This document shows positions 4,858 to 55,522 of a stretch of 64,000 nt of DNA, piece by piece (positions within the stretch are counted from its first letter, which is position 1; every line of letters starts with the position of its first letter). The DNA is from Phaeosaccion multiseriatum. Its lineage: Eukaryota > Protista > Ochrophyta, other classes. The position numbers and the translations under genes are program-made. The stretch lies in assembly GCA_965112735.1 (NCBI GenBank), contig OZ218953.1:1612001-1676000 (forward strand). Reading direction: 5' to 3'. The notes below the pieces were generated by a model. The model was not told the origin of the DNA and did not search any database. It worked only from the letters and a program-made list of their open reading frames with translations.

Positions 4858-5105
4858 GGGAGGGGGGGGGAGGGCGCAAACTCATTCATGTGCCCTCCCC
4901 TTTCTCTAGGAAGCAAAACGTGTGAAGTGCTCCAACACTTCGTCTCTTCCATTAATAAAAGAATAGCATTGTATGAGGGAAAGGGGTGGTTTCTTTATAG
5001 GATTAACTTAAGAATGCACAAGTTTCGCCAATATGGAATACAATTCAATGGGGCCATTGGCTCGACCGTCAAGGAAAGGTTTGTGGGCTTCAAGGTGAGC
5101 CCGCT

Positions 5106-5579
5106 TCAGTTACTCCCGCTGCCGCTGCCGCTGCCGCTGCCGCTGCCGCTGTCGCTCGAGGACGAGTACTTCTTGGGGGGAATAACTGGGTCGGAGTAGA
5201 CAGGCTGCCGAGAGAGAAGGACGAGGAGGAGGCGGGTTGGTGTGAGGACAGTGACGAGGAGAATGGAGGCAGGACAAATAACGGGGACAAGGGAGGTCCG
5301 ACTTCACTCCCTTTCCCTCTTACCTTGTGATGGATCACCACGGGATACGGCTAAGTAGAAGGAGCGAGAGGGAGCAAGTGCCAAGAGAGTGGGGTGAGTG
5401 TGTGAAGCAAGAGAATAGATGTGACAAGAGAGCACTTAAGGGTAGAAGCTCACCTTGTAGCGTGTGAACTCGGGGTAATGTCCACCCTTGGTCTTCTTGT
5501 ACTTCGAGGCCCCGTAATAGCCCTTGCCGTATCCGCCCCAGCCACCATAGCCTCTTCCAGATCCGAATCCGCTGCCTGA

Positions 5580-5617
<38 letters not shown>

Positions 5618-6426
5618 TGGACTTTCCTCCGTACCACTTGTGGTGATAGACTGGGTAGTGGACTGTCTTGAGGAAGTAGGGGGCATGCTGGTGAACTACG
5701 CCCGGCCCCTTCCCGCCAAGCTGTCGGCGCCCGGAGCCGCTGCCGCTCGAGGAGGAGTACTTCTTGGGGGGGATGACAGGGTCGGAGTAGACAGGCTGAC
5801 GAGAGAGAGTGGACGAGGCGGGTGCGAGTTGATGTGAGTGCGAGGAGAGTGATGAGGGACAATGGAGGCAGGACAATAACGAGGGCAATGGAGGTCCGAC
5901 GTCACTCCCTCTCCCTCTCTTACCTTGTGATGGATCACCACGGGATACGGCTAAGCAGAAGAAGCGTTGAGCGAGAGGGATCACGGAAGCAAGTGACACA
6001 GAGAGTGAGGCGAGTGAGTGACGTAAGAGAACAGAGGAGCATTATAGGGTAGAAGCTCACCTTGTAGCGTGTGAACTCGGGGTAATGTCCACCCTTGGTC
6101 TTCTTGTACTTCGAGGCCCCGTAGTAGCCCCTGCCGTATCCGCCCCAGCCACCATAGCCTCCGCGGCTCCCAGATCCGGATCCGCTGCCTGACGCAGAGC
6201 CAGAGCCAGAGCCAGAGCCAGAGCTGGACTTGCCTCCGTACCACTTATGGTGATAGACAGGGTAGTGGACTGTCTTGAGGAAGTAGGGGGCGTGCTGGTG
6301 AACGACGCCCGGCCCGCCGTATTTGCCGCCCAGCTTACGGGGGACGAGCTTCTGCTCCTCCTGCGCCTCCCCGGCGCAGAGGCCCACGAGGGCCAGGATG
6401 GTGGTGGTGAAGGCAGCGAGCTTCAT
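5106..6426 (-). CDS. Secreted Gly/Ser/Tyr/His/Lys-rich RXL polyprotein, gene A copy 1 (silaffin/cingulin-like architecture), 286 aa, 5 exons
   Basis: Exons 6426-6061, 5950-5924, 5795-5454, 5350-5324 and 5204-5106, all joined by phase-0 GT-AG introns. Signal peptide MKLAAFTTTILALVGLCAG, acidic EAQEEQ, then two repeats starting after RKL and RRQL: GGK..VVHQHAPYFLKTVHYPVYHHKWYGGK(SG)n..GGYGGWGGYG.GYYGASKYKKTKGGHYPEFTRYK-PYPVVIHHK-PVYSDPVIPPKKYSSSS. Confidence 0.85.
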
Positions 6427-8194
6427 GGCTAGATGAAAGTTGTGAGCGTGGGCTCTCCCTCCCAGGCGTGTCATAGAACCATGCCCTTGACATGCAAAAA
6501 TGAGCTCCTGGAAATGAAGCCCGTTTTGATCACTATTCAACACTCTCCCTTCTTATACTTCGTTGAAGGCGAGAGAACACTTTGGCCTTTCCCCACGTCA
6601 TTGGCCCTTTTCTTCGTTGGAGCAGGAGCCGCCACAGTCCCCACCCCTCTTCACCGGCTCACTTGCTGAAGTAGCGTCTGCAGTGGACGACGAAAATCCA
6701 AACGAGCTCAGGCCTTGTAGCGAGAAAGTACAAGCATGCCTGCCACTAGGTTGGAGGTCATCACTCGAACAGGAGCGGCACCGAGGCTGAGCGAGAGCCA
6801 AGGGGATCGTCAAGAAGCGCTTGGGGCGGGCGGGCTGGGTAGACGCATGGTACCACGAGAGGAGGAGTTCGGCAGACGGCATGGCCTACCAATCGAGCTT
6901 TCTGTTGGCACGAGGGACGTAGAGCAGCCGAGTGGGAAATGCGGAGAGCGGTGCCATCTCTCTATATACGGCTTAATGGCGTTCTTCCACTTGTGGTAAA
7001 ATGTCAATGCAAGACCGACCAAGACATCGCGACGCGAGCTGCTCCTCCTGTGTCCTGCTCTTTCGTCAGACATGCCGCCGCCTGAGGCGGACTTTCCAGC
7101 CCTACCGGGGGCGATCAACGGCAGTCTCGGCTTCAATACTTGTATACTCGCGCGAAGTGCCAGTTTTGGGTCTGTGCATTGGTGCTCTCCCCCATCCCCT
7201 CAAAACAGCAGGCTACTATTCCTGCTGCACAGATGGCGAAGTTGAGGAAGAAGGTCCCCCGTCCCGACCCTTGTGCGTGCGTCTGACGGAAGGTCGAGTC
7301 TCTGCTGCTGATGCAGACTGTTGCAGACTCTTGCAGGTCCAAGCGCCCCAACGCGAGTCAGCGCCTTGCCCACACACACCTTGCCCACACACGCCCTGCC
7401 CACAGCAGCTTGTGCCTCGCATCCCCGCGACAGCGCTATGCCGGTGATCCCTTAGAGCAGGAGATGCAACACATGTCCAAGCCCGCCTTTCCCAGCAAGG
7501 GGCAGAGCGACTCGACAGAGGGTCATGCCGATATGCCTCTGCGCCTGCTCACGAAGACCTGCCGCATGTGCCTTCTGTGTGGCCCCAAAGAGGCGATCTC
7601 TCTTCCGAAACCATACTGGAAGTGGCTTCTGCAGTGCGCGAAGCCACCTTCGAGGCGAAGTGTGCGATAGACGACTCGCACTAAGAAGCGAGCGAGTGTT
7701 GCGTGCAGTCAAGGTGCCGGCAAAAGCTCGAGAGCGAACGTCCAAAACGTCCAACAGCTCTTATCGGGAAACAATGAAGTACCTTCGTTGCTGCAAGGAA
7801 TTGCTCGCCCCACTCTCGTCCTGCGCAAAGATCCTCCTCTCCATGGGGGATGTTCGCCATAGTGCACACTTTCCCCCCTGCAGTGGCACGCCCGCGGTTG
7901 ACAAGCTTCCTCCGCTTCCTAAGCTGCTACTGCAGCCTGTGGTATGGATGTTCTCTCTATTGCCATTGTAATGACGAAGGGGAGGTGCGCAAGGAGAGCG
8001 ATGCTCGCGGAGAGAGCAGATACCGGGAGGGAAAGTGGGCGTGGAAGAGGCCCAATCTGGAGCAGCAAAAAGGGTTCCTTGGAAATGTGCTCTGGTAAAT
8101 GGCGCTTGACACCTCGCCACACAAGCCCCCTCTCTCTGCTCACAAACACTCTTCCCCTGCAAGCAGCCACACCCAAAACCAACCCACACTCAAG

Positions 8195-8949
8195 ATGAAG
8201 GTTCTCCAAGTGCTCATGGCCCTCGCAGCCGCCCTCGCTCTTGCCACCAGCGCCAGCGTGCCCATTACGGACGCCGCCACTGCGGAAGAGACCAACCAAC
8301 GCGAGCTGTAAGTAGTCCTCAAGGCGCGTCGTTTCCCCTTTTTTGCGTCGCTTAGAACCGTGCCGCTCCTCCTTTCATTGCTGTTGGCCTCGATTCTCAC
8401 GTTGAGTGCGTCCCTCGCCTTTCGTCCCGTGTCTCATGCTGCACTCGTAGTCACTATGGACGCAGCTCATCGGGCTCCAAGTCTTACGGCAGGGGCTGGG
8501 GCCGCGGCTACGGCAGGGGCTGGGGCCACGGCTACGGCAGGGGCTGGGGTTCCTCGCTCTCCTCCTCGGGCTCCAAGTCTTCCTTGGGTGGACGCTTCTA
8601 TGGCAGGGGCTGGGGCCACGGCTACGGCAGGGGCTGGGGCTCCTCGCTCTCCGCCTCGGGATCCAAGTCTTCTTCAGGATCCAAGTCCTCGGGTAGTGGA
8701 CACTTCTACGGCAGGGGCTGGGGCTACTCGGGTTCCTCGCTCTCCTCCTCGGGCTCCAAGTCTTCCTCGGGTAGCTCGGGCTCCTCCTCCTCCAAGTCTT
8801 CATCCTCCAAGTCTTCCTCGGGATCCTCCTCCTCCAAGTCTTCCTCGGGTAGCTCAGGCTCCTCCTCGGGCTCCAAATCTTCCTCGGGTAGCTCATCCTC
8901 CAAGTCTTCCTCGGGTAGCTCGGGTTCCTCCTCCAAGGGTGCATGGTAA
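8195..8949 (+). CDS. Secreted Ser/Gly/Lys-rich protein with YGRGWG repeats, gene B copy 1 (silaffin/cingulin-like architecture), 198 aa, 2 exons
   Basis: Exon 1 8195-8307 (MKVLQVLMALAAALALATSASVPITDAATAEETNQRE-L), phase-2 GTAAGT...CAG intron 8308-8465, exon 2 8466-8949 (SSGSKSYGRGWGRGYGRGWGHG...SSSSKSSSGSSGSSSKGAW). No acidic residue follows the REL motif. Confidence 0.85.
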
Positions 8950-9416
8950 AGAAACCAGGACAGGACTACGAGTAAGCGAACAGCACATGCACCTCGCGTA
9001 ACAATTTAATGAAACGATTCAAGCCACGCTTCTTCTGCCCCCCTTCGCAGCCTTGTCATAAAAACTCTGCGATGCACTCTGCGATGCACCTCCGTCCTTT
9101 CGCGTCGTTTGCGATGCTCTCGCAGTTTGAGATGCACCTTCTCGCTTGCTTCGCGTCAAGCAGCAGCGGTTACTCTCCCTACGTACGCCCCCGCTCTCCA
9201 TTCTCTTAGCAACCAAACCCTTGAGCTTCTCAGGAAGTCATGGAGTCCTAGACCTTGACGGAAGCAGTTGAGCACGTGTGCATGGAGACTTCGTGGTGTG
9301 TCAAAACTGATTGATTAACTTAAAATGCACAAGTTTCGCCAATATGGAATACAATTCAATGGGGCCATTGGCTCGACCGTCAAGGAAAGGTTTGTGGGCT
9401 TCAAGGTGAGCCGGCT

Positions 9417-10484
9417 TCAGTTACTCCCGCTGCCGCTGCCGCTCGAGGACGAGTACTTCTTGGGGGGAATAACTGGGTCGGAGTAGACAGGCTGCCGAGA
9501 GAGGAGGACGAGGAGGAGGCGGGTTGGTGTGAGGACAGTGACGAGGAGAATGGAGGCAGGACATAACGATTGACTTCACCCCCTCTCCCTCTTACCTTGT
9601 GATGGATCACCACGGGATATGGCTAAGTAGAAGAAGCGTTGAGCGAGAGGGATCACGGGAGCAAGTGACAAGAGAGTGGGGTGAGTGTGTGAAGCAAGAG
9701 AATAGATGTGACAAGAGAGCACTTAAGGGTAGAAGCTCACCTTGTAGCGTGTGAACTCGGGGTAATGTCCACCCTTGGTCTTCTTGTACTTCGAGGCCCC
9801 GTAATAGCCCTTGCCGTATCCGCCCCAGCCACCATAGCCTCTTCCAGATCCGAATCCGCTGCCTGACGCAGAGCCAGAGCCAGAGCCAGAGCCAGAACTG
9901 GACTTTCCTCCGTACCACTTGTGGTGATAGACAGGGTAGTGGACTGTCTTGAGGAAGTAGGGGGCATGCTGGTGAACTACGCCCGGCCCCTTCCCGCCAA
10001 GCTGTCGGCGCCCGGAGCCGCTGCCGCTCGAGGAGGAGTACTTCTTGGGGGGGATGACAGGGTCGGAGTAGACAGGCTGACGAGAGAGAGTGGACGAGGC
10101 GGGTGCGAGTTGATGTGAGTGCGGGGAGGAAAGAGACGAGTGACAATGGAGGCAGGACAATAACGAGGGCAATGGAGGTCCGACGTCACTCCCTCTCCCT
10201 CTCTTACCTTGTGATGGATCACCACGGGATACGGCTAAGCAGAAGAAGCGTTGAGCGAGAGGGATCACGGAAGCAAATGACAAGAGAGTGAGGCGAGTGA
10301 GTGAAGTAAGAGAACAGAGGAGCATTATAGGGTAGAAGCTCACACCTTGTAGCGTGTGAACTCGGGGTAATGTCCACCCTTGGTCTTCTTGTACTTCGAG
10401 GCCCCGTAGTAGCCCCTGCCGTATCCGCCCCAGCCACCATAGCCTCCGCGGCTCCCAGATCCGGATCCGCTGCCTGACGCAGAG

Positions 10485-10527
<43 letters not shown>

Positions 10528-10741
10528 TGGACTTGCCTCCGTACCACTTATGGTGATAGACAGGGTAGTGGACTGTCTTGAGGAAGTAGGGGGCGTGCTG
10601 GTGAACGACGCCCGGCCCGCCGTACTTGCCGCCGTACTTGCCACCCAGCTTACGGGGGACGAGCTTCTGCTCCTCCTGCGCCTCCCCGGCGCAGAGGCCC
10701 ACGAGGGCCAGGATGGTGGTGGCGAAGGCGATGACCTTCAT
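9417..10741 (-). CDS. Secreted Gly/Ser/Tyr/His/Lys-rich RXL polyprotein, gene A copy 2, 286 aa, 5 exons
   Basis: Exons 10741-10346, 10234-10208, 10076-9741, 9622-9596 and 9491-9417. Same layout as 5106-6426, with an extra KYGG and different (SG)n lengths. First donor reads GTGTGAGC. Confidence 0.82.
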
Positions 10742-12442
10742 GGTTAGATGATGGTTAGTGGAGAGGTGTGGTGGTTGTAAGGGGGGGGTGGTCTCTCTCT
10801 TGAGGCCGTGTCATAGAAGCGTGCCCTTGACATGCAAAAAATGAGCTCCTGGAAAGGAACCCTTTTTTATCACTTTTATCACCTTATTTTTGTTCGTTGA
10901 AGGCGAGAGAACTCGTTTGTGCCTTTGCCCGGAGTCGCCCAATGGCCCTTTCTGCGTTGGAGCAGGAGGTCCGTCTGGTAGCTGCTGGATAAGCCGCCGC
11001 CACAGTCCCCACACCTCTTCACCGGCTCACTTGCTGTAGTAGCGTCAGCAGTCGACGACGAAGCCTCGTAGCGAGAAAGCACAAGCATACCTGCTCGCTT
11101 GGATAGGAGCTGAAAAGAGAGAACTTGACGCAGCGACAGCACCGAGGCTGAGCGAGAGCCAAGGGGATCGTCAAGAAGCGCTTGGGGCGGGCGGGCTGGG
11201 TAGACGAATGGTACCACAAGAGGAGGAGTTCGGCAGACGGCATGTCCTGCCAATCGAGCTTTCTGTTGGCACGAGGGACGTAGAGCACACGAGTGGGAAA
11301 TGCGGAGGGCGGTGCCATCTCTCTATACGGCTTAATGGCGCTCTTCCACTTGTGGTAAAATGTCAATGCAAGACCGACCAAGACATCGCGACGCGAGCTG
11401 CTCCTCCTGTGTCATGCTCTTTCGTCAGACATGCCGCCGCCTGAGGTGGACATTCCAGCCCTACGGGGGGCGATCAACTGCAGTCTCGGCTTCAATACAC
11501 TCGCGCAAAGTGCCACTGTGCATTGTTGCTCTCCTCCTCCCCCTCAAAACAGCAGGCTTCTATTCCTGCTGCACAGATGGCGAAGTTGAGGAAGAAGGTC
11601 CCCCGTCCCGACCCTTGTGCGCCTGACGGAAGGTCGAGCCTCTGCTGCTGATGCAGACTCTTGCAGACTCTTGCAGGTCCAAGCGCCCCAACGCGAGTCA
11701 GCGCCTGGCCCACACACACCTTGCCCACACACGCCCTGCCCATAGCAGCTTGTGCCTCGCATCCCCGCGACAGTGCTATGCCGGTGATCCCTCAGAGCAG
11801 GAGGTGCAGGACACATGTCCATGCCCGCCTTTCGCAGCAAGGGGCAGAGCGACTCGACAGAGGGTCATGCCGATATGCCTCTGCGCCTGCTCATGAAGAC
11901 CTGCCGCATGTGCCTTCTGTGTGGCCCCAAAGAGGCGATCTCTCTTCCGAAACCATACTGGAAGTGCTCACTTCTGCAGTGCGCGAAGCCGCCTTCGAGG
12001 CGAAGTGTGCGAAAGACGACGCACACTGAGACAGGCAAGCGACCGAGTCGAGTGTCGCGTGCAGTCAAGGTGCCGGCAAAACCTCGAGAGCGAAAGCCCA
12101 ACAACTCTTGTCGGGAAACTGTGGAGTGACTTGTTTGCTGCAAGGAATTGCTCGCCCCACTCTCGTCCTGCGCAAAGATCCTCCTCTCCATGGGGGATGT
12201 TCGCCATAGTGCACACTTTCCCCCCTGCAGTGGCACTTCCGCGATGGACAAGTTTCCTCTGCTTCCTAAGCTATACTGCTGCATCCTGAATGTTCTCTCT
12301 ATTGCCATTGTACCATGACGAAGATAGGTGCGCAAGGAGAGCGAGGCTCGTGGAGAGAACAGGCTCAGGATACCGGGAGGGGAAGTGGGCGTGGAGGAGG
12401 CCAGCAGCAGCAAAAACGGTTCCCTGGAATGTGCTCGGTAAT

Positions 12443-12698
12443 GGTGTGGAGGAGCTGGGAAGGGCTCAATTACGTAATTATTATGTAGGCAGTGTACCAT
12501 AAGTCAACGGGTGACGGATCTACAGGGGCCGCTGGCCCCCTTCCTCATCCTGAACCCGTAAAAGACCAAGTGGAAAAAGCTTCCATAAACACAAGGAAGC
12601 TTCCTAGTTAGTATCACTTTTACCTTTGACGGGAACTTAGTGCTCAGCTTGGGGGTTATCTTCATACTCTCCAGGCAGAGGTAGGTAGCGTCCCCACC
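12443..12698. mobile_element. ~256-bp insertion specific to copy 2, possibly a MITE-like element
   Basis: Absent from the equivalent site in copy 1 (ggtaaATggcgcttgac, about 8094-8110). Ends are GGTGTGGA...TCCCCACC (7/8 inverted match), flanked by AT on both sides. Confidence 0.4.
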
Positions 12699-12792
12699 AT
12701 GGCGCTTGACACCTCGCCACACAAGCCCCCTCTCTGCTCACAATCACTCTTCCCCTGCAAGCAGCCACCCCCAAAACCAACCCACACTCAAG

Positions 12793-13339
12793 ATGCAGGT
12801 TCTCCAAGTGCTCATAGCCCTCGCAGCCGCCCTCGCTCTTGCCACCGGCGTCAGTGTGCCCATTACGGACGCCGCCGTCACCACTGCTGAAGAGACCAAC
12901 CAACGCGAGCTGTAAGTGGTCCTCAAGGCGCCTCGCTTCCCCTTTTTTGCGTCTCTTGGAACCATGCCGCTCATCACTTCTTTGCCGTTTGCCCCGATTC
13001 TAACGCTGTTGGTCCCGTGTCTCATGTTACACTGGACGCAGCTCATCGGGCTTCAAGTCTTACGGCAGGGGCTGGGGCCGCGGCTACGGCAGGGGCTGCG
13101 GTTCCTCGCTCTCCGCCTCGGGCTCCAAGTCTTCCTCGGGTGGACGCTTCTATGGCAAGGGCTGGGGCTCCTCGCTTTCCTCGGGTAGCTCAGGCTCCAA
13201 GTCTTCCTCCGGTAGCTCATTCTCCAAGTCCTCCTTGGGTAGCTGGGGCTCCTGCTGGGGCTCCAAATCTTCCTCGGGTAGCTCATCCTCCAAGTCTTCT
13301 TTTCCCCACCCACCAACGGCTCAGAGCTGCTGCGTTTAA
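12793..13339 (+). CDS. Secreted Ser/Gly/Lys-rich YGRGWG protein, gene B copy 2, shortened (138 aa) with a new C-terminus from the duplication breakpoint
   Basis: Exon 1 12793-12911 (MQVLQVLIALAAALALATGVSVPITDAAVTTAEETNQRE-L), intron 12912-13041, exon 2 13042-13339 ending ...SSKSSFPHPPTAQSCCV-TAA. Confidence 0.75.
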
Positions 13340-15021: not shown

Positions 15022-16747
15022 ATGGCGGCGTCAGGTACAGCAGATATGGAGTCGAACGACATTTGGGGTGAGGAGCAGGATCAGCTGGACGAGGAGGTCC
15101 TTCGCATGAGCTCGGAGGAGCTGAAGCAGCGAATCAGGTCAGTCCAAGTCAGATGGTTCCTTCGTTCACCTCTGTCGAGATGGCGTCTGCCAAACGGGAG
15201 TCGGCATTAAGTGCACTCTCTCGTTGGTTTGAAAGGGAAATGAGTGCTGACAGATGATTTGCTGGTTCTTGTGTGCACCCCAAGAGATGTAATATGTTGT
15301 TCTCTGTCTGTATCTCTCTCTCTGCCACTGTTCTCTCTCCCACAGATTGTTAGACAACGAGATCAGGATCATGAGGTCCGACAAAGACCGCATCCGCCAC
15401 GAGTCGCAGGCGCAGCGAGACAAGATCAAGGAGAACCTCGAAAAGATCAAGCTCAACAAGCAGCTGCCCTACCTCGTGGGAAACGTCGTGGAGCTTCTAG
15501 AGCTCAAGGACGAGGAGGAGGAGGGTGAGTGTGACTCAACGACGTTTTTGGAAGCCTGCAAGCTTCGTTAAAACGGCGCTCAAAAAGATATACACTCATG
15601 CATTTTTGGCTGACTCCCGTTGGCGTTGACGCTCGCTTTGTCTTGTTGCCCTTCCACACCCACCCACCACCCGCGCACTCCACCACCCCACCTCCCCAAC
15701 GAGCAGAGGAGGACGGAGGGGCCCAGGACGTCGATGCCGGGCGTGACGGAAAGAGTGCGGTGGTCAAAACGTCAACGAGACAGGTGAGGGAGGGAGAGCA
15801 GGGTAGAAGGGCAGTTAGGGCGAACATGTACATGTGTATGAGGTGTCTAATGGAGTATGCTGATACCTCAGTTTGGCTTTGCCACGCGTTGCCCTTTGCC
15901 CCTCCTCTTTTGAAGTGGTGTTTGACTTGTCAGTATCGCTCGTGTCCTTCTCATCCTCTTCCATCCTCTTCCTCCTCCTCCCCCCACAGACTATCTACCT
16001 TCCCGTGCCCGGTTTGGTGCCTGTGGAAGAGCTGCAGCCCGGAGACCTCGTGGGGACTAACAAAGACTCGTACCTCATTCTGGAGAAGCTTCCCAATGAG
16101 TACGACAACAGGTTGGTTCGTCCTCAAGCCTGCCAGCCAGGCAGGCAGGCAGCACAGGCAGGCCTTGAGATGAAACGAGTCGGTCAGCCAGAGGATTAGT
16201 TAGTCGGAATCTCCAATTGAAGAACTAAGGGTCGCTCTAACTTCTTCGCTCTCTTTGCCTGCCTCTCTGTCTGCCTCTCTGTGGTGTTTGTTTGTCAGGG
16301 TGAAGGCCATGGAGGTTGACGAGAAGCCAACGGAGGAGTACTCCGACATTGGGGGCTGCGACAAGCAGGTGCGTGCGTGTGTGCGTGTGTGCGTGCGTCG
16401 TAAGTCAGTCTCTCGTGCCCCCCCCCGCTACTCTACTCTTGGTTAGCAGGATGTGCCCCTGCCCTACTCTTGATTAGCAACAAGTTGTGGGGAGGGGGGA
16501 TGCAATAGACAAAACGAAACGCAACGCAACGCAATGCAACGCAACGCAACGCACCACAACGTAAACGCAACACGCCTTTCTACGGCTGTTACGCCCGCCC
16601 GTAGGGCACGAGCGACATGGCTTGGATATATCATTTGGTCTGCTCACTTGAACCCTCCACCCCCGTCCTCCTCTTCCCTTCCTTTTGTTTTAACACATGC
16701 TCTCGCGACACGACACGACACGAACACACACGCACACATACGCGCGC

Positions 16748-16781
<34 letters not shown>

Positions 16782-18169
16782 GTGCACGCGCGCGCACAGA
16801 TCCAAGAACTCATCGAGGCCGTCGTGCTGCCCATGACACACAAGGACATGTTCATCAACTTGGGCATCCGACCCCCCAAGGGCATCCTCCTGCACGGACC
16901 CCCAGGCACAGGCAAGACTCTCCTGGCCCGCGCCTGCGCCAACCAAACCGACGCCATCTTCCTCAAGCTAGCGGGGCCGCAGCTGGTGCAAATGTTTATC
17001 GGAGACGGGGCCAAGCTGGTGAGGGATGCGTTCGAGCTGGCCAAGGAGAAGTGCAAGGATCAGTCCAAGGGAGGCGCCATCATCTTTATCGATGAGCTGG
17101 ACGCCATTGGCACCAAGCGTTTTGGGGGGGAGCAGAGCGGGGACAGGGAGGTGCAGCGAACCATGCTCGAGCTGCTCAATCAGCTAGGTGAGTCAGAACA
17201 AACGGCAAAAGAAGGAAGAGAACTCGAATGTCACTTCTACGGTCACCAGCAGGATCTCTTTCCTTCTCGAGGAAGCGCCTTTCCCCCCCTCCCCCACCCC
17301 AGCGCCCTGTCCTCTCGGTAGATCACCTCACCCCCTCTCCCTCCCACCCTGCCTCCCATGTCTCCCCTCTCCCTCTTCCTTCTTTCTTTCCTCTCTTCAT
17401 CAATCACTCCCTCTCCTTCACAGATGGCTTCAGCTCGAACGACCAAATCAAGGTCATCGCCGCCACCAACCGCCCGGACGTGCTGGACCCTGCCCTGCTT
17501 CGATCGGGCCGATTAGACCGCAAGATCGAGCTGCCTCACCCGACTGAGGACGCGCGGGCTCGCATCATGCAGATCCACAGCAGGAAGATGAACGTGGACA
17601 AGGACGACGTTAACTTTGAGGTGAGCCATCGGTGGGAGGCATGTGTGTGGACACGTGCGTGTACATGTGTGTATATCTGGGTCTCTTCTCTCTCTCTCTG
17701 TGTGTGTGTGTATTGGCGCTCTTTCTTTCTTTCTGTCTGTCTCTCTGCGATGTTGCCATCTCCCCCCCCCCCCCCCCCCCCCCCCCCTTTTTTTTGTGAG
17801 GATGAAGAGTCGACGCAGCTCTACCCCCGAGTGCTCCACCAAAGCACCCGCCTTAACTTTTCCTCCCCGCATAAGGCGGCGTCAAGAAATCGTTTCTCCC
17901 TTGTTACCTCTCACGACACGCCTTCTTCATTGTGTGCGCCATCCACCCACCCGCCCCTCCCCTTCCCTCTCCTCCTCCCTTCCTCACAACAACAGGAGCT
18001 GGCAAGGAGCTGTGACGACTTCAACGGTGCGCAGCTCAAGGCCGTGTGCGTGGAGGCGGGCATGCTGGCATTGCGCAGGGAGGCATCGGAGATTAAGCAC
18101 GAGGACTTTATGGAGGGCATTAACGTGGTGCAGGCCAAGAAGAAGGGCAGCCTGGACTACTACGCATAA
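15022..18169 (+). CDS. RPT5: 26S proteasome AAA-ATPase regulatory subunit 6A (RPT5/PSMC3), multi-exon
   Basis: [52 protein letters not shown], Walker A GPPGTGKT, Walker [24 protein letters not shown], and C-terminal HbYX ...SLDYYA. Canonical introns. Confidence 0.97.
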
Positions 18170-18964: not shown

Positions 18965-21790
18965 ATGTTTTGCATCCTCCTTCTCCTCGCGCCGATGCTG
19001 CTGCTCCAGGACGTTGTCGGGCAAGGCTCTGGCGCCGCGTCCTCCAGCGCCAGCTACAGCGAGGTGTGCGTCAGCTCTGAGGAGTGCATCTCGGCTGCAG
19101 GAGACGACCTGCTGGAAGATTTGAAGGTGCAAGGGATGGGAATGGTGTGCGATCCCTTCAGCTGTGGCAGACGGAGCGAAGAGTGAGTCATGGGGCGTCT
19201 CTTTTGGCGTGCAATCAATCATTCGGCGTTAAGACTTGCAGTAGCGAATTTCTTTTCTTGTCATGAGTAGTTCTGCCCCGGCACCACCAGCCTCTTTCAA
19301 GCGATTGCCGAATGGCAATAGCCCCCTCCCCGATGTGACTTGCGGCGTGCCGATCATCTCTTATCCCTTTTTCTCTTCCCTTCCCCTATGTTGCCCCCTA
19401 CCCTTCCAGGAGAGAGCTCTGCCACACCCTGCAAGTGAGCCCCGCTGCTCAAGCCGCTGCACCCTCCGGTGTAGGCGCCTTGTTCGGCTGCCGTAGTTGC
19501 TACCATGAAGACGCGGAGGGCCTACTGGGCGTGCCTGCCGAGGAAGTGAGGCTCGATCTCTGCTGGGGCCGCCAAGGACGAGGCTTCCACTGGCCCGGGG
19601 GGAGGAGCGCTGGCCAACAAGAGCAAACACAGAAGGGTGAGGAGGAGGAGGAGGAGCAGCAGCAGCAGCAGCAGCATGAAGAGGAGGAGGAGGAGGAGGA
19701 GGAGGAGGAGGAGGAGGAGGAGGAGGAGGAGGAGAAGCAAGAGGAGGAAGAAGAGGAGAGGAAGGTGCCGCACCTCGTACGGCAGAGTCGGCGCTATCTG
19801 TGGGGGGACGCGCCCAGCAACCCCAAGAAGAAGAAGAAAAACGTCATCTTTATTATTTGCGATGACATGCGACCCGAGCTTAGCATCTACGGTCGTGAAC
19901 ACGCCCTAACCCCCAACTTCGAGCGTTTGAGCGCGAGGGGGGTGACGATGGACAAGATGTACAACTCGGTGGCCGTGTGCCAGCCTTCCAGAGAGGCTCT
20001 CTTCTCCGGTCGGCGGCCTGACAAGATCAAGGTATGTGTCTGTGTAGCTTCTGGCTCCGGCATCTTGCTTGCTCGCTCTCTCCCTCTCTGGTGTGAGTCT
20101 CACTTTCTCCCCCCTTTCCCCTCTCCCTCCCTCCCTCCCTCCCACTCTCTCTTTTCTTCTCTCCCGCCCCTCTACATGCCTTTCTCTTCACGGGCACCTC
20201 AACACGAAGCCCCTCCCCCTTCCCCCCTCCCCTACCCTTCCCTCCCCTCCCCTCCCCCCTCCCCTACCTTCCCCTCCCCTCCCCTCCCCCCTCCCCTACC
20301 TTCCCCTCCCCGCCCCTCCCCCGCTCCGGCCCCCCTCCTTTCTCAATTGTTTTGGGACACTCGCACACTGGATGCTCACACCGCCCCCTCCCCCACACCC
20401 CCTGCAACCCCAAAAGGTGTGGGGCTTTGAAGCCCTCTGGAGCGGCGCGAACATGGTCAAATACCTTAGCGACGATGCGCACGGCTATCAGTCATGGAAC
20501 TCAGGCAAGACGTTTCACTTCACGGGCCACAACAACGGGTGGAAGGCTCCCCATGTCGACCCCCACCTGCCCATGTGGCTGGGAGGCTCTCGCTATCAGG
20601 TAACGTGTATAGACCGAGTACTTAAACCTCCATGCCGGACACCCCAACACCTTACACCTATGGCTGCCTCACGGCTAACGTCGGTCGTCGCATCCTCCAC
20701 CTTCTCCAAGTTGGTTTCCGTGTGCATACGAGGGCATAACATGTCTGTGTCTCTCTCTCTACATAACCCGCCCCCACCCCCACCCCCACCCCACCTCCTT
20801 CCTCTCTCTTACCTCCTCCACTGCGATACGAATACAACACGAAACAACACACACACGCACGCAACACTCGCACGCACACACTCACACTCGCACGTATACA
20901 CACATACATACACACAGGACCCCAAGCTTCCTAACAAGTGGTACTCGTATCAAGGCAAGGAATATGGCTACTTCTTCCGTCCCAACGAACCCAACATCGT
21001 CAAGTTCGAGGCTGGGGCGGGCCCGCACCTCAACCCGGAGAAGCACGAACAGGACTTTGCCGAGGATGACTTTGCTGACTACGTGCTTACCGACCAGGCC
21101 CTCAAGGCCCTCGCCCTGCTCACCAATGTCCAGCCCCACCACGACAGCGAGGAGCAGCAGCCCTTCCTTCTTGGGGTGGGCTTTAAGAACCCGCATTACA
21201 TGCACCACATACCGAAGAGGTCTGTGTGTGTGTTGTGTGTGTATCGTGTGACGGGTGTATTGGCCATCCAGACAGGAGAGGGGGCTGGGGCTGGCTTTGA
21301 TCTGTATGTGTGTGTGCGTGTATGTGTGTGTGTGTATGTGTGTGTGTGTGTGTAAGTGCGTGTGTGTGTGTGCGTGTATGTGTGTGTATGTGTGTGTGTA
21401 TATGTGTGTGTGTGCCTGCCCGTGTGTTGTGTCCTAACGATTCAGCCTCTGCGTCTCCCGTCGTCGCTTCTGCTTGCTGCGCGATTGGGACGAACGTTAT
21501 TTATGTGCGTGTGCGCGTGTGCGGCGCGTGCGTGTGCGTGTGCGTGTGCGTGTGCGTGCGTGGTTATCACAGGATCTGGGACAAGTACGAAAACCTCGAT
21601 GTCGCCAAACTCCTGGAGGGGGTTTCTCTGCAGTGGCCACAGAGCATCAACCGCTTCGAGAGACAGTTCCAGACAGACCTCATGGAAGGCACCGTGCAGC
21701 TCGTGGACGGGCGGTGAGTACGACTGAGTAAGGGGACCGGGGGGGGGGGGGAGGAGCACATGTGTGTTGATGCCCCGCGTGCACGCACGC

Positions 21791-27767: not shown

Positions 27768-28573
27768 CATATGGGCAGCAGCAGCGATATGACTCACGGG
27801 CACCGTCGCCCAGTCCAAGTGGCAAGGCCAGCAGCCAACAGCAGCCACCGCAGCAGCAGCAACAGCAGGCCCCGCAGCGACGCGTTCGAGGCGGCATTCT
27901 CGTGCCAACTGTTATCGATGCTCCCAGTGGAGCCTTGCCGAAGATGACTTGGGCTTCCGGTGGAGGTTGGGGGAGTGGTGGTGGTGGAAGCGGCAGCGGC
28001 GGCGGGGGCGAGGCGGGCGGTAAGAAGAAGAGCCTGACTGAGATTCAGGCAGAGGAGGCGGAACAGGACCGCTTGATAGAGGAGCGGAAGAGGGAAGCCG
28101 CCGCGAAGGGCAAGAAGGAGAAGGAGGAGGAGGTACAAGGGGGAGGTGAAGCCGGGGAGGGTGAGGGGAAGGGTGACGTGGAGCTAGAGGCCGGCGTGGA
28201 GGAGCAGAAGGAGGCTGCCGCTGGCTCGGTGGGTGCGGGCGAGGAGGAAGCGGGGGAGGAGGAGGAGGAGGAGGAGGAGGAGGAGGAGGAGAAGGAGGAG
28301 GAGGAGGAGGAGCAGGAGGAGGGGGGGGAGAGCGGCACGATACCTGGGGATGCGGAAGAAGACAGCGAGAAGACGGGACTCGACAATGACGCCACTACTA
28401 CGGATGGGCCGGGTGAGGACAGAGCAGACGAAGGCGGGGAGGAAGAAGCAGAGGAAAAGGAGGAGGAGGAGGAGGAGGAGGAGGAGCTTGGGGTTGGAGA
28501 GGAAGCCGAGGGGGCGGAGGAGGAGGAGGAGGAGGAGGAGGAGGAGGAGGAGGAGGAGGAGGAGGAGGAGTAG
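24256..28573 (+). CDS. Large hypothetical coiled-coil protein with NLS-like N-terminus and poly-Glu tail, multi-exon
   Basis: MSGFPPQNG...KKKKKRRRK start, GT-AG introns, long heptad-rich exon (about 25824-27550), Q-rich and E-rich C-terminus. A frame change is needed in the G-rich stretch at about 27551-27602. Confidence 0.65.
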
Positions 28574-28820
28574 CATCTCAAACTTGAAGAGATGCCGAAA
28601 AGGACGCGGGGTAGGAGAAAGAACCGTCGGGGGGGGGGAGCGGAGGGGAGCAGAGGGAAACAAGGGGCCCCCAAGACACTTGCTTTATAAGTAGCGTGTC
28701 TCTTCACTCGCTTCACCCAATCAGTGTGCCGCTTATTATAAAATGGAAGCAAGGCTCTTTTTTCCCCCGTCCTAAGCGGTGCTGCAGCTTGTGGTATGGA
28801 TCCTTGCGATTGTACGATAA

Positions 28821-31488: not shown

Positions 31489-34400
31489 CTAACCCGCTGT
31501 GCTGCCGCTCCTGTCCTCCTCCTCCTCCTCCTCCTCCTCCTCCTCCTCCTCCTCCTCCTCCTCCTCCTCCTCCTCCTCCTCCTCTTCATCCTCCTCCTCC
31601 GGCCGCCCGTGGATACCGTACGGTCGAAAGCCGTCGTAGGCCAAACTATCGTCCACATTATAGTGAAGGCGGTGGTAGCAGTGCTCACAAAAGGCCATGG
31701 GATGCGCATCGGCCAGTACGTCGCCGTAGCAGTTCACTCTTGCCGCGTGGAAGTTGCACACCTCACAACGAGAGACTGTCTCCTTGGCTTGGAAGGACGT
31801 GTGGGGTGCCTGTATCCAGGGGGAGGAGCCTTGTTCGTCCACTTCCTCTGCAGGAGTAGGACCAGTAGCAGCAGTGGCGGTGGCGCTGGTGGCCGTGGTT
31901 GCACTCGTGTTGCCATCCTCGCTACCGTCACCGTCACCAGCACCACTTCCCGAAGCGGCACCACCGGCACCACCGCTACCACCATCAACGCCGGCGACAG
32001 AGGACGGAAGCACCGTCTCATCGCCACTCCAGGTACTGTCCGCAAGAGAGGGTGGGGAGGATGGAGCCTTCCTCTTCCTCCACATTGCACTCTCTCGGCT
32101 CCTCAAACAGTACATGTCCGTGAACATGAGGCGGTGCCAGCAAGTGCCGCGGTGGCACAGCATGTACTGGCGACCGATGACTACCCTCAGGCTCGAAAAA
32201 GTGGTGCGGTTCATGCTCAGTATCGGCGGTTGCCACGCCTTCTCTCCTGCCCTCTGGCCCTCCTCCTTCTCCTCCTCCTTCTCCTCCTCCGGCTGCTGCT
32301 GCTGCTGCTGCTGCTGTTGCCGCCCTGTCTTTCTCTGTTGATGCTTCTCTTGCATTTTTGAAATGAGAGGGGCACAGCAAAGCTCTCGGCGTTCCTCGTC
32401 CACCCGATCGTCGACATAGAAGGCGCCCTCGATGAGGAAGAAGGAAGGATCGCTGCACGGGGGCTCCGGCTTGCCTGCCTCGCCTGCCGACCCCCCCCTC
32501 CCTTCCCTTCCGGCGGCGGTGTGCAGCTGGTCAGACAGGCACGGAATGTAGTCACGGAGGACACTCAGCGGGTGACTACCGAGCACCTGTTGCGTGTTTG
32601 TGCGTGTGGGTGTGCGTGTGGGTGTGCACGGAGTGGATGAGGAGGGAAGGAAGGAAGGAAGGAAGGAAGGAAGGAAGGAAGGAAGGAAGGCAGCGGGGGG
32701 GAGGGGGGGCGAATGAGATACGGAGGTGCCGTGAATTAAGGAGCCACGTGGGAGAGCCAAGCTACCTCCCCATGCTTCACTCACACAAGCCTCTTCCGCT
32801 TCCGAAGGGAGAGAGACGTCCAAGCCTATACATCATTTCCTTTCGTGCTTCCCTCTCGTGAAGAAAGCCTTTGAGTACTGCACCTGAAATTCATGCGTCC
32901 GGCGGTCGCTTCGGGCGTCGTAGAAGGCAACCGTAACGACGACGTCGTCTGTTAGAGTGTTTCCACGTGCCCTCTCCCCCCCGCCACTGGCGCTCGAGCT
33001 GGCACGTCCCCTGCGTTCATCGGCCCTGCTGGAGCGACGAGGCCCCTGCTCCTGCTCCTGCTCCTGCTCCTGCGCCTCCTCCTCCTTCTCCTTCTCCTCC
33101 TCCTCCTCCTCCTCCTCCTCCTCCTCCTCCTCCTCCTTCTCCTCCTTCTCCTCCTCCTCCTCCTCCTCCTCCTCCTCCTCCTCCTCCTCCTCCAGCTGCT
33201 GCTCGCTCGGGGGCGGTGGCCGCGAGAGAGGCAAGGAGAGGTCCACAAGGCCTCCTTGAGAGGCACTCGCGACAACAGGGTGGAGCTGGACAGGTGGCGC
33301 GGCGCAATTCACTTCTTCCGCAAAGTGCCGCTCTATTCTCCAGGGGGGCAGCCCGAGTGAGTGAGTGTGTGAGAGAGTCAGGGAGGGAGGGAGAGAGAGA
33401 GGGAGGGAGGGAGTGAGCGAGTCAGGGAGGGAGGGAGAGAGAGCCGATCCCACGCCCGCCCGCCCGGGTTGTCAGTCCGCCGATCAACCCCAACCTTTGC
33501 ATCTCCTGTCCCGTCCTGTCCCCTCCTCTCACTGTCATCTTGTGCTGCTCTTCGAGGGTCTATCTCTCGACCCACCCTGTTCTGCCCTACCGTGTATCCG
33601 CCCTGCCTTGCCCTGCCCTACCCCTGTCCATGTACCTCTACCCTGCTCTCACTGTGCCCCTACATCTCACCTCCGGGGCGCAGCGAAGCATGGCCTCCCA
33701 GAAGCCGACACGCCCTCTCCGTGTACAGCCCCGAGCACAGCCGCTCATCCAGCCACTGCAAATTGGGCACCGCTTTGAAGATCTGGCGCAGCCTCCACGT
33801 GTATTCGTCGTCTTCCGTGCTGGGCTGGACTGGAGAGTTCGCTTGATCCTGCTCTCTGGCATCCATCCGTGCCTCTCCGGCGGCAGCAGCAGCACCTTTT
33901 TCTCCTCCTCCTCCTCCTCCTCCTCCTCCTCCTCCTCCTCCTCCTCCTCCTCCTCCTCCTCCTCCTCCTCCTCCCCCTCCTCCCCTCTCTGTTACTTCTT
34001 CTGCTACTGCTTCATCCCCTTTCTCTTGTTCTACCCCTCCATCACACAAATTTCCCGTTTCCACGGATTCAGTTCTTGCTGCCTCGTCCCTTGGCGCGGT
34101 ATTCGTCTCCTCCCCGCCTTCTTGTAGCCCTTCACCCTCGCCCTCCTGCACAATGTCACCGCCATCTTTCCCATCCTCCTCCTCCTCGACTCCTCCCCGT
34201 CCTCCCTCCCCCCCCCCCTCCTCCTGCTCCTTCTCCTCCGCGTCTTCTCCCTTAGTATCTTCTCGCATGTCAATGCGCAGCCCTACTGGCAGGTGCACGT
34301 GGGCCAAGGACTCCCCGAGAAAGCACTGCTTCGTGCTTTGACCCCTCTTCCTCCTCGTGCGACTAGTCGGCCGCCCGTCTCTCCACCGCGAAAAATGCTC

Positions 34401-50236: not shown

Positions 50237-50935
50237 TTATTTCTTCGCCTTGGTGGGTGTCTTCTTCTTCACGACCTTCTTCTTGGTCACGGTCTTCTTC
50301 TTGGCTGCGACGGGCTTCTTGGCTGGCTTCTTCTTGGTGGGAGTCTTGGCCTTGGGCTTCTTGGTGGGGGTCTTGGCCTTGGGCTTCTTGGTAGGGGTCT
50401 TCTTGACAGTGGCCTTCTTCTTGGCAGGGGCAGCCTTCTTTGCTGGCGCCTTCTTGGCAGGAGCTGCCTTCTTGGCGACTGCGGTCTTCCTCACGGGCTT
50501 CTTCTCGTCAGGGCTCAGCTTGTAGGAAGCCCTGCGGAAAGGAGTTGGGGCGGAAGAGGAAGGTCAGTCGTTAGAGAAGCAAGGCGTACAACAAGCATCG
50601 GGGGGAGGGGGGACACCACAACCAAGGGAGAAAGAGCACGAACTTGACCTTGATGGGGGGGGGGGGGGGCAAGAAACACTAGACGAGAAATAGCAAATGG
50701 CGCAACGGGGGGGGGGGGGGGCAAGCGCAATCGTCCCGGCGTATGTGGAAACTCACTTGATCTTGATGAGCTTTCCGAGCTCGACTCCCTTCTTGAGGGC
50801 GGCTTTGAGCTGGTGGGGCTGGAAGTTGACATCCGAGTGGTTGGTCTCGATGTACTTCTTAATGGCGGGGAGGGAGCTTCCGTTCCTCTCCTTGAGGGAT
50901 AGGAGGCTCTCCTTGATCATGGCGTAGTAAGTCAT
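50237..50935 (-). CDS. H1: Histone H1 (copy B), 2 exons
   Basis: Same globular domain and intron position as copy A; tail ends [13 protein letters not shown]. Confidence 0.95.
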
Positions 50936-52100
50936 TGCTGGGCTGTTGGTGGCTGTGTGCGGAGGACGTCGATGGAAGAGAAACGGAACGAGAACCGCCG
51001 CGGAGAGAAGGACAGCAGCGCGAAGGGCACAGACAGGAACAGGTGAGAGCTGCGGCACACAAAAGTCTCAGCTGAGGAGATCCCTTCAGCTGAGGAGGTC
51101 CCTCAGCCAGAGCGAGAGAGCAGCCCGATACACATCACAACTCCGCACTCGGGGCAGTCAAAATTGGCGTTGAACGAACGTGAGAGCGCCGTCGACGGCC
51201 GCGACCTGCAGCTCAAGTTGCCGCAGGTTGCAGCAGCAGAGGCCCTTCGTCCTCCCCCTTCCCTTCAGTTGCTCGCTCCGCTGTTTGCACTCTCCCTGCC
51301 TGCCCCCCTCCGCTCCGCTCCGCGCATATCTCTCCCCCCCCAAACCGCGCTCGACTCTTCACTTTCCAACCGCCGCTCGCCCTGCTGCTCCTCGATCAGC
51401 GTTTCGACTGCACTCGGCAACACGGCACTCGCCTTATCCTCCCCTCCGCCGTGTTGGTACCTGCCCCCCCCCCGCTTCCCCGCGCACGTACCTTGGCAAA
51501 GAGCAGGGTGGTTGTGAGGGGGGGCGATTTGGAAAAGCTCGGCAAAATCTGCGGAAAACGGCATTCAAAATCGGTGCAGCGAAATTGGAGAACCGAAATT
51601 GGGAGTGCCGAAATCGCCGGCGTGTGTGACCTGCTAGCGGCCGACCAACCATCAGCTGCCACCGCCGGTGTGAGCTGCTACCTGCTGCTATGTGCCACCA
51701 AGACTTGCTCGGTAGCACGTCAGGGGTCGACAGGAAATAGCCGAGAGGCCTCCGAAGGTTACGTGCACACACACATAGAGACAAACATACGCACAAGCTC
51801 TGCCCTCCCCGCAGTACCAACATTCTATAAAAGTTAAGGGGCCGGAGCAGTCTCCACGCCGTGCTCACTCGCCACTCCGACGCCCAAAGCAGTCACATGA
51901 GCAGAGGAAGGGGAGGGAGGGTAAGCGAGAAAGAAAAGGGCGAGGGAGGGAGGAAGAGGAAGGGATGAGGGAAGGAGGGATAGAAAGAAGAAGGGAGGGA
52001 CGTGGAGGGAGGGAGGAAGAGAATGAGTAAGGGATTGAAGAAGGAAGAGGAAGAGATGGTGGAGGGAAGGAAGGAGGGACATCGTCTCTTTCGGAAGGGT

Positions 52101-52160: not shown

Positions 52161-52940
52161 CTATTTCTTGGCCTTGGTGGGTGTCTTCTTCTTCACGACC
52201 TTCTTCTTGGTCACGGTCTTCTTCTTGGCTGCGACGGGCTTCTTGGCTGGCTTCTTCTTGGTGGGAGTCTTGGCCTTGGGCTTCTTGGTGGGGGTCTTGG
52301 CCTTGGGCTTCTTGGTAGGGGTCTTCTTGACAGCGGCCTTCTTCTTGGCAGGGGCAGCCTTCTTTGCTGGCGCCTTCTTAGCAGGAGCTGCCTTCTTGGC
52401 AGGAGCTGCCTTCTTGGCGACAGCGGTCTTCCTCACGGGCTTCTTCTCGTCAGGGCTCAGCTTGTAGGAAGCCCTGCGGAACGGAGTTGTTGAGGGGTGG
52501 GGCGGAAGAGGCAAGTTGTCAAACGACAGGAAAGCATAGTGAGGAGAGACGAGAAAGAGCACAAACTCTATCTCCATGTAAAAGGGGGAGGAGATAAGTC
52601 GAGCCGTAAAGAGAGTCAAGCATTGTGAGAGAAAGAGCAAGAACGTACTCTCTGTGTGCAAAGAAGTGCAAGGGTGGGGAGGGGCAGGTAAATGGTACGC
52701 CAGAAGAAGGAAAGAGGATCACATTCAGAAAGACAATGAGCATGTGTAAAAGGTTACGCACTTGATCTTGATGAGCTTTCCGACCTCGACTCCCTTCTTG
52801 AGGGCAGCCTTGAGCTGGTGGGGCTGGAAGTTGACATCCGAGTGGTTGGTCTCGATGTACTTCTTAATGGCGGGCAGGGAGCTGCCGTTCCTGTCCTTGA
52901 GGGACAGGAGGCTCTCCTTGATCATGGCGTAGTAAGTCAT
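52161..52940 (-). CDS. H1: Histone H1 (copy C), 2 exons
   Basis: Same globular domain and intron position (donor GTGCGT); one extra KKAAPA unit. Confidence 0.95.
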
Positions 52941-53680
52941 GGTGGTTGTGGCTATGTGCGGAAAGCGTGCAGGCCGGCAGGGAACGGGTGGAGGGAGCAC
53001 AGAGGAGAGAAGGAATGACAGTAGTGCAAAGGGAACAGACAGGAAGAGAGGAAGAGGTCAGAAGAGTTGCAGTAGACACGGGCCCGCCACAGGGAGGGTC
53101 CTCAGACGAGACAGCATCATGAGAGGGGGAGATGGATTTCGAAGCTCTGCACTCCAGGCGCCGCGTCAAAACCTCGTTGAAAAAGGCCCCCACGAAGCGC
53201 GACGGGCGCCAACGCCAGCCCAGAGCCCCCCCTCCCATCCCCTGTCCCTCGCCTCTGCGTCTCTCGACCTCCTCCGCACGGGCATATCTCTCCCCCTCCC
53301 CTTCTTCTCTTTCCATCTGCCTCTCTCTGCCATCTCTCTCCCCCTCCCCTCTTCTCTTTCCAACCGCCACAAATCACATCAAATCAAATCACGCAAATCC
53401 TCGTCTAGCATTCGTCTACAGTCTGGATCGAGCAAATCCTCTCCTTCCCCTTTCCTCCTCTCCTCTCCTTCTCTCTTCTCTTACATTCGGCAAGGCGTAA
53501 GGCTGAAGCAGTGTGTGCACAAAAATTTTAGAAACGGCGATATCAAAAGATCCGACAAAAGCACTTCCGGGTCGGAATACGCGCGGCTCGCGGGGACGTC
53601 CCCAAAATGATTTTTTTGCGCTCTCCTCCCCGCTGCCGTCTTCGCTTACCTTTGCTTCGGTTAAGCAAGACTACAGCACC

Positions 53681-54140: not shown

Positions 54141-54467
<327 letters not shown>

Positions 54468-55488: not shown

Positions 55489-55522
<34 letters not shown>

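Follow-up and report, generated by a model that had tools for sequence, protein, structure and literature searches.

The question raised by this locus is what kind of secreted protein a duplicated, head-to-head gene pair of an ochrophyte alga encodes. The locus lies at positions 5,106 to 13,339 of a 64,000-nucleotide stretch of the Phaeosaccion multiseriatum genome (contig OZ218953.1, positions 1,612,001 to 1,676,000; hereafter the window), and its two genes are called A and B, with the copies numbered A1, B1, A2, and B2. An earlier note on this DNA had proposed a silaffin/cingulin-like biomineral, wall or adhesive system. The locus is most likely a recently duplicated, lineage-specific gene pair for secreted, disordered, strongly cationic low-complexity proteins. 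We speculate that these proteins form a self-assembling, cross-linkable extracellular wall or adhesive material, a reading to which we give a probability of roughly 0.45.

Direct-repeat analysis and global alignment showed a tandem repeat with a period of approximately 4,312 bp, whose copies are for the most part 91–100% identical. In each copy, A on the minus strand and B on the plus strand diverge across a spacer, which is 1,768 bp long in copy 1 and 2,051 bp in copy 2. The end points given in the earlier note are correct: position 5106 is where the stop codon of A1 ends, and position 13339 is the stop of B2. The global alignment showed that the two copies are 97–100% identical across most of the A gene, introns included. 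The identity was 83–98% in the spacer and approximately 67–75% immediately 5′ of the A start codon. These results bear out two claims of the earlier note, namely a divergent spliced pair across a spacer of approximately 1.8 kb, and the tandem duplication of that pair. No further A or B paralogue was found in the 64-kb window, where only low-complexity Ser-rich look-alikes occurred at approximately 28.2–28.6, 31.5, and 33.0–34.0 kb. The Ser-rich low-complexity stretches at 28117–28695, 31508–31654, 33011–33352, and 33855–33983 resemble the B tail in composition only. The coordinates of the locus are shown in Table 1.

Table 1. Features of the duplicated A/B locus, with positions counted from the first letter of the window.
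Feature	Position	Strand	Basis or remark
Gene A1, 5 exons, 286 aa	6426-6061, 5950-5924, 5795-5454, 5350-5324, 5204-5106	-	GT..AG, phase 0, open frame, exon conservation
Gene A2, 5 exons, 286 aa	10741-10346, 10234-10208, 10076-9741, 9622-9596, 9491-9417	-	GT..AG, comparison with A1
Gene B1, 203 aa	8195-8307, 8451-8949 (or from 8466)	+	143-nt intron; GT..AG
Gene B2, 138 aa	12793-12911, 13042-13339	+	Truncated, diverged; GT..AG
Divergent A1-B1 spacer, 1,768 bp	6427..8194		No ORF conserved in both copies; no Rfam match
Tandem duplication unit, copy 1	5001..9312		A1, spacer, B1 and B1 3′ flank; ~4.3-kb repeat families; alignment homology from 5001/9313
Tandem duplication unit, copy 2	9313..13299		A2, spacer, truncated B2; homology ends ~13299 (= 8909 in copy 1)
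Insertion, 258 bp	12445..12702		Gap versus copy 1; ATGG at both ends; 91 bp 5′ of B2 ATG

The gene models were obtained by locating the exon peptides in the directly read sequence and inspecting the flanking bases. All introns of A are in phase 0, have GT..AG ends, and are 103–131 nt long. The earlier note had described long microsatellite introns; the introns of A and B are only 103–143 nt long and are not microsatellites, and the hexamer microsatellites of the locus are exonic. A1 is laid out as a signal peptide, the pro-piece EAQEEQKLVPRKL, a first unit ending in RRQL, and a second unit. A2 differs from A1 by four substitutions and by in-frame length changes in GGKY and in the (SG)n runs.

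Gene A is an internal duplication of a three-exon module, comprising a large exon, a 27-nt microexon, and a tail exon. The microexons are identical or one base apart, and their splice sites are intact in all four instances. Comparison of the two modules of A1 gave exon identities of 95.3%, 100%, and 92.2%, with indels of 6, 6, and 6 nt, and intron identities of 81.9% and 86.4%, indels of 1 and 2 nt being among those in the introns. Between A1 and A2, the indels are 12, 18, 6, and 24 nt in exons and 2, 1, 3, 15, and 15 nt in introns. Across A and B together, every exonic indel between copies is a multiple of 3 (6, 12, 18, 24, 30, and 111 nt), and the intron indels include 1, 2, and 16 nt. The A and B genes look real because their exons are more conserved than their introns and their exonic indels are multiples of 3, which is more than chance would produce.

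The reading frame of A was also distinct. The proposed frame of exon 1 is the sole stop-free frame, and the GC content at its third codon positions (GC3) is 0.79, against 0.55–0.58 in the other sense frames. The codon choice (AAG, TAC, and GGC; GC3 0.73–0.77) matches that of the histone H4 and Rsm22 open reading frames (ORFs) of the window. The ratio of nonsynonymous to synonymous differences (pN/pS) was 0.32 between A1 and A2 and 0.26 between the A modules, values that come from few counts and in which the alignment of (SG)n inflates the synonymous term. The (SG)n runs themselves are pure hexamer microsatellites. Gene A looks real and constrained.

The coding case is weaker for B than for A. 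Several frames are open in the repetitive sequence of B, including an antisense frame at 8375–8944, and GC3 does not discriminate between them. The B frame was chosen because it has an in-frame canonical splice in both copies, its indels are all multiples of 3, and the antisense frame is broken in B2. The antisense ORF opposite B1 exon 2 (8375–8944, minus strand, 189 aa) would encode an Arg/Pro/Trp/Lys-rich repeat with no signal peptide, meets a stop in B2, and was dismissed as an artefact that mirrors the repetitive coding strand. In B, the intron interrupts the Leu codon of REL, which leaves RE and the first two Leu bases at the end of B1 exon 1. B1 has a choice of two in-frame acceptor AGs, separated by 15 nt, and B2 retains only the second. 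The predicted N-terminus of mature B is HYGRSSSGSK or SSGSK, depending on the acceptor. B1 contains internal tandem repeats of 90 nt and of 27–66 nt. Further 5′, an ATG at 8099 shares the frame of the B1 start, and initiation there would extend the protein by 32 residues ahead of the signal peptide. In copy 2 (12699–12792), a 2-nt difference shifts this ATG out of frame with B2. The region 8099–8194 is probably a 5′ untranslated region (5′UTR) or an upstream ORF.

The earlier note had treated B2 as a full copy, and this did not hold. Homology to B1 stops within exon 2 (approximately 13299), the original 3′ end is lost, and B2 reads into the flanking DNA, which gives it a new 12-residue tail. 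B2 also has in-frame deletions of 111, 18, 18, 30, and 24 nt relative to B1 and carries four new Cys. The pN/pS between B1 and B2 was 0.74, which is consistent with relaxed constraint on the damaged copy. B2 is probably decaying. The 258-bp insertion upstream of B2 occurs in copy 2 only, has a lower GC content, and is unique within the window. It could be the footprint of a small mobile element.

No relatives of A or B were found in the databases searched. Pfam gave no match at E ≤ 1 for exons 1 and 3 of A or for either exon of B. Compared by phmmer with 1.84 billion representatives, A exon 1 had no match. It was also used in a word-seeded search of 5.8 billion proteins, which yielded 200 candidates, none of them significant, within a length range of 67–213 aa that would miss a 286-aa protein. 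In a word-seeded search with B exon 2, none of the 8,000 candidates scored was significant, a weak negative given that the candidates were picked by low-complexity words. In metagenomes, A exon 3 and B exon 2 gave pattern matches alone, none of which was confirmed. The matches in the PDB were only to synthetic Gly-Ser linkers, and a literature search on the peptide strings found nothing relevant.

The absence of relatives would also fit another origin, in which A and B are young, possibly non-functional ORFs that arose by micro- and minisatellite expansion beside a fortuitous signal-peptide-like start and would be silent or without consequence for the cell. The pure hexamer runs of A and the 27–90-nt tandem repeats of which B is built are in line with this origin, as are the open antisense frame of B1 exon 2 and the visible degeneration of B2. 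The older divergence between the A modules argues against it, with exons 92–100% and introns 82–86% identical. Moreover, the exonic indels all preserve the frame, the microexon splice sites are intact in 4/4 instances, the frame of A is the only one open, and its pN/pS is approximately 0.3. We consider such an origin very unlikely.

The mature chains of both genes are strongly basic. Mature A has 254 residues, of which 24% are G, 17% S, 11–12% Y, 10% K, 8% P, and 6% H. Its isoelectric point (pI) is 10 and its net charge is approximately +28 to +30, with four or five acidic residues and no Cys. Mature B1 has 165 residues, of which 46% are S and 25% are G, with 20 Lys + Arg, 17 aromatics, and a pI of 11.2. 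It contains no Asp or Glu, in agreement with the earlier note. B1 is a diblock, in which 30-residue repeats carrying YGRGWG (aromatic/Arg) are followed by a Ser/Lys/Gly tail of 27–66-nt repeats. The motifs quoted in the earlier note (EAQEEQ..RKL, RRQL, DAATAEET..REL, (SG)n, GGYGGWGGY, KYKKTK, YGRGWG, and SSKSSSGS) were all found. AlphaFold2 gave models without secondary structure, with a predicted local distance difference test score (pLDDT) of 57 for the A unit and 39 for B and a predicted template modelling score (pTM) of 0.13–0.14. The mature A and B chains are therefore predicted to be disordered.

The N-termini of A and B resemble signal peptides. The Kyte-Doolittle mean was 2.54–2.91 over the best 10 residues, and no acidic residue occurs before or within this core. 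A1, A2, and B1 have a Lys close to their first residue, and small residues occupy positions −3 and −1 of the putative cleavage site (CAG followed by E; SAS followed by V). An acidic pro-piece comes next, which has 13 residues in A (EAQEEQKLVPRKL) and approximately 17 residues in B1, where it ends in NQREL. The R-x-L motif sits 13–17 residues past the signal peptide. RKL and RRQL in A and REL in B are kept in both copies, as judged by the presence of the motif only. The starts of both A units follow an R-x-L, with RKL preceding GGKYGGPGVVHQH and RRQL preceding GGKGPGVVHQH. The two units of A are near-identical, and unit 2 opens with the same GGK..GPGVVHQH that stands after the first RKL.

Leaders with R-x-L that are cleaved after Leu within approximately 40 residues of the signal peptide are known from oomycete RXLR effectors and from the PEXEL of Plasmodium (PMC11754927). 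R-x-L cleavage has likewise been documented in diatoms (PMC4557024, PMC5525289). The likeness of A and B to RXLR and PEXEL proteins is that R-x-L lies in a disordered stretch no more than approximately 40 residues from the signal peptide, where in those proteins it is cleaved after Leu before secretion (PMC11754927). That such cleavage occurs both in another stramenopile group and in an alveolate suggests that the processing step is old and general. A and B differ from RXLR effectors in that their fourth position is not Arg (RKLG, RELH or RELS, RQLG) and EER is absent. Their mature part is of low complexity with no folded effector domain, and A has an internal site far from the signal peptide. 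They differ from PEXEL (R-x-L-x-E/D/Q) in their fifth positions, which are G, Y (or S), and G. Since R-x-L leaders are cleaved in oomycete effectors too, the leader is no pointer to silica. It is best read as a general secretory processing signal in this part of the eukaryote tree, not as a silica mark.

The precursor layout nevertheless leads to the silica question. Diatom precursors have a signal peptide and a short stretch ending in R-x-L, which is removed by an unknown protease; the repeat units of Sil1p end in R-R-x-L, and R-x-L sites also occur in frustulins, cingulins, and silacidins (PMC4557024, PMC5525289). A and B might accordingly be counterparts of silaffins and cingulins, cut at R-x-L, modified on Lys and Ser, and patterning silica scales, cysts, plates or another biomineral. 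Like Sil1p of Cylindrotheca fusiformis and the silaffin-like proteins, they combine a signal peptide and a pro-piece ending in R-x-L with a basic, repetitive Ser/Gly/Lys chain that is of low complexity and species-restricted (PMC4557024, PMC5501833). The RRQL at the end of the A unit resembles the RRIL/RRNL that end the Sil1p units (PMC4557024). The Tyr-rich A and the Trp-bearing B loosely recall CinY and CinW of Thalassiosira pseudonana, which are also secreted and repetitive, with Tyr- or Trp-rich parts between Ser/Gly/Lys parts and with R-x-L sites (PMC9650480, PMC4557024).

The features of silaffins and cingulins were searched for by script, as repeated K-X-X-K (X = S/G), pentalysine clusters, and lysine-enriched regions of K(S/G)2-4K. 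The published screen for silaffin-like proteins uses K-X-X-K (X = S or G) spaced 1–6 residues apart and five non-consecutive Lys within 12–14 residues (PMC5501833). Cingulins carry lysine-enriched regions of K(S/G)2-4K that alternate with Trp- or Tyr-rich regions (PMC9650480, PMC4557024). K-(S/G)2-K occurs zero times in A1, A2, B1, and B2. K-(S/G)4-K occurs once, in B1, and not in A. Five Lys within 14 residues, a point in favour of the silica role, are reached in a single window, in unit 2 of A1 and A2 (GKGYYGASKYKKTK); this window includes consecutive KK, and unit 1 has four Lys. B has at most two Lys per 14 residues. The lysine-enriched region of cingulins is absent from A and B, although aromatic-rich regions exist.

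Other differences point the same way. The Lys residues of cingulins lie almost entirely in clustered K(S/G)2-4K, and the aromatics of B are partnered by Arg, not Lys. The Tyr/His/Pro blocks of A are absent from silaffins, and clustered K-X-X-K is absent from A and B. No homology to silaffins or cingulins was found in the phmmer (A exon 1) and metagenome searches, and frustulins and oomycete effectors, which are not silica proteins, carry R-x-L leaders as well (PMC4557024, PMC11754927). Judged by their sequences, membership of A and B in the silaffins or cingulins is not supported; a similar mode of action is possible. Nothing ties A and B to silica, and we regard a role as silaffin or cingulin counterparts as quite unlikely. 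The earlier proposal of a silaffin/cingulin-like system therefore survives in part: the precursor layout stands and a wall or adhesive role is still the best guess, and the likeness to silaffins and cingulins fails on the absent lysine motif and the lack of a homologue.

The favoured reading is that A and B are wall or adhesive materials. We infer that both are made as pre-pro-proteins, whose signal peptide would direct them to the endoplasmic reticulum. A secretory-pathway endoprotease of the type at work in diatoms and oomycetes would probably then remove the acidic pro-piece, cutting behind the Leu of R-x-L. The products of A would be two modules of approximately 125 and 129 residues, with a high content of Gly, Ser, Tyr, His, Lys, and Pro, and the product of B would be a diblock of an aromatic/Arg sticker block (the YGRGWG repeats) and a Ser/Lys/Gly tail. 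Outside the cell, these chains would be the bulk material of a wall, cyst coat, sheath or adhesive. They may condense via cation-π and aromatic contacts and harden by oxidative Tyr cross-linking and His-metal coordination, and the Ser-rich stretches may bear phosphate or sugar. A bulk material fits better than catalysis or signalling because the products are large, disordered, Cys-free polycations with regularly spaced aromatic and Arg/Lys stickers, and because of the His/Tyr/Pro blocks, the long Ser-rich stretches, and the recent gene amplification. Tandem amplification fits a product that is required in bulk.

Similar compositions have been described in extracellular materials. The cement of the sandcastle worm combines basic Gly/Tyr/Lys/His proteins with a poly-phosphoserine protein and 3,4-dihydroxyphenylalanine (DOPA) cross-links, and it sets by charge-driven condensation and the formation of these cross-links (PMC4275877). 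Like A and B, its Pc-1/Pc-2 and Pc-3 are a repetitive, secreted set with a limited alphabet, in which basic Tyr/Gly/Lys/His chains stand beside a Ser-dominated chain. The cement differs in that it comes from an animal and is unrelated in sequence, and the Ser block of B is fused to a cationic block and retains Lys. Plant walls contain glycine-rich proteins (GRP) and proline-rich proteins (PRP), with Gly-Tyr runs and Pro-Val-Tyr-Lys-type repeats, and A has GGYGGWGGYG, KPVY, PPKKY, and PYPVV (PMC4020777). No tandem pentapeptide array of PPVYK/PPVEK was found, the KPVY, PPKKY, and PYPVV being isolated. A differs further from the plant proteins in having far more His and Ser and an R-x-L pro-piece. 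Since the plant lineage is unrelated, the resemblance of GRP and PRP to A is compositional only.

Several points weigh against a wall or adhesive role. Composition alone cannot tell a structural role from silica templating or antimicrobial activity. With no relatives in the databases searched, no cross-species conservation backs a function. The AlphaFold2 models were made from single sequences, and the signal peptides were called with a plain heuristic based on hydrophobicity. No cross-linking enzyme, kinase or wall-synthesis gene adjoins the locus, and the nearest informative neighbours, an RPT5-like ATPase and a sulfatase-domain ORF, are approximately 6–8 kb off. As a control for R-x-L, all ATG starts of the window with a signal-peptide-like N-terminus were taken, and the motif was sought between residues 21 and 51. 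It was present in 13 of these 46 starts, most of the 13 being clearly spurious ORFs, indicating that the motif is common by chance in this GC-rich sequence. The bare R-x-L motif is weak evidence. It gains weight here because it lies at the switch from acidic to basic sequence, is found again where the two A units meet, and is conserved in each copy.

High positive charge and a tandem arrangement are also seen in defence peptides. A and B would then be R-x-L-processed, cationic, Gly- and aromatic-rich antimicrobial peptides, tandem-amplified like the nematode nlp/cnc clusters. The nematode NLP and caenacin (CNC) peptides are basic, Gly- and aromatic-rich, Cys-free, and secreted; they are typified by YGGWG/YGGYG and encoded in recently duplicated clusters (PMC6780910, PMC2453101). 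YGGWG occurs within the GGYGGWGGYG of A, once per unit, and the variant YGRGWG occurs 6 times in B. The polyprotein layout, the absence of Cys, the recent duplication, and the B1 versus B2 pN/pS of 0.74 would also agree with a defence role. However, mature chains of approximately 125–165 residues are large for such peptides and much longer than those of nematodes, and such peptides do not typically have a Ser/Lys tail like that of B, with its 75 residues, or Pro/His/Tyr blocks like those of A. An R-x-L leader replaces the nematode precursor layout, and phmmer with A exon 1 found no homology to the nematode families. A1 and A2 have been kept alike and are not diversifying (pN/pS 0.32), and the raised ratio of B2 is more simply explained by decay, given its truncation and the insertion in its promoter. 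We consider a defence role unlikely.

The earlier note had also regarded A and B as a co-regulated two-component system. No word of at least 9 nt is common to all four A and B upstream regions, and a single 10-mer is common to A1 and B1 only; the claim is not upheld, the pair having been copied passively. Because A and B were copied as one block by segmental duplication, their repetition is uninformative on functional coupling. Both are polycations, and they would not neutralise each other unless their Ser-rich parts were phosphorylated, which is possible. The A1–B1 spacer is probably made up of two separate promoter/5′UTR regions. A gene within the spacer was ruled out, as no ORF is preserved in both copies, and no Rfam match to a non-coding RNA was found in the region.

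Other genes were annotated in the window. Two ORF pieces at 16617–18169 (plus strand), called RPT5 in the earlier note, have AAA ATPase and AAA-lid domains, which were checked. An ORF at 19435–20430 (plus strand), approximately 6 kb past the duplicated locus, has the N-terminus of a sulfatase domain (E 8e-10) and may have a bearing on the chemistry of the extracellular matrix. A SNAPC3 domain is encoded in an ORF at 31489–32823 (minus strand). Two linker-histone-like genes (50753–51058 and 52161–53000, minus strand) have near-identical globular-domain exons and Lys/Ala/Pro-rich tails, and an intronless histone H4 gene lies at 54156–54467 (plus strand). The single ORF at 54786–56513 (minus strand) encodes a mitochondrial methyltransferase of the Rsm22/METTL17 type that contains long runs of Glu, Gln, and Gly. 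It has no exact database record, and its best relative was 34% identical in a search limited by low-complexity words.

A wider reading, which we hold to be unlikely, would place the locus in a large repertoire of R-x-L-processed, polycationic, aromatic, disordered proteins of a non-diatom ochrophyte, acting as a coacervate-type wall, adhesive or mineral template. The layout would then be an older stramenopile route to extracellular low-complexity materials, later turned to silica by diatoms, with a cleavage step in common with oomycete RXLR effectors. If A and B are expressed and processed as proposed, a silaffin/cingulin-style precursor layout would be present outside diatoms, on proteins without the silica-linked lysine motifs. 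A, as a two-module Tyr/His/Lys chain, and B, as a diblock of stickers and a Ser/Lys tail, would be compact natural designs of possible interest for underwater adhesion or coacervation. If true, the finding would bear on the origin of diatom biosilica proteins and on the question of a single, old stramenopile R-x-L protease that would process wall proteins, silica proteins, and oomycete effectors alike.

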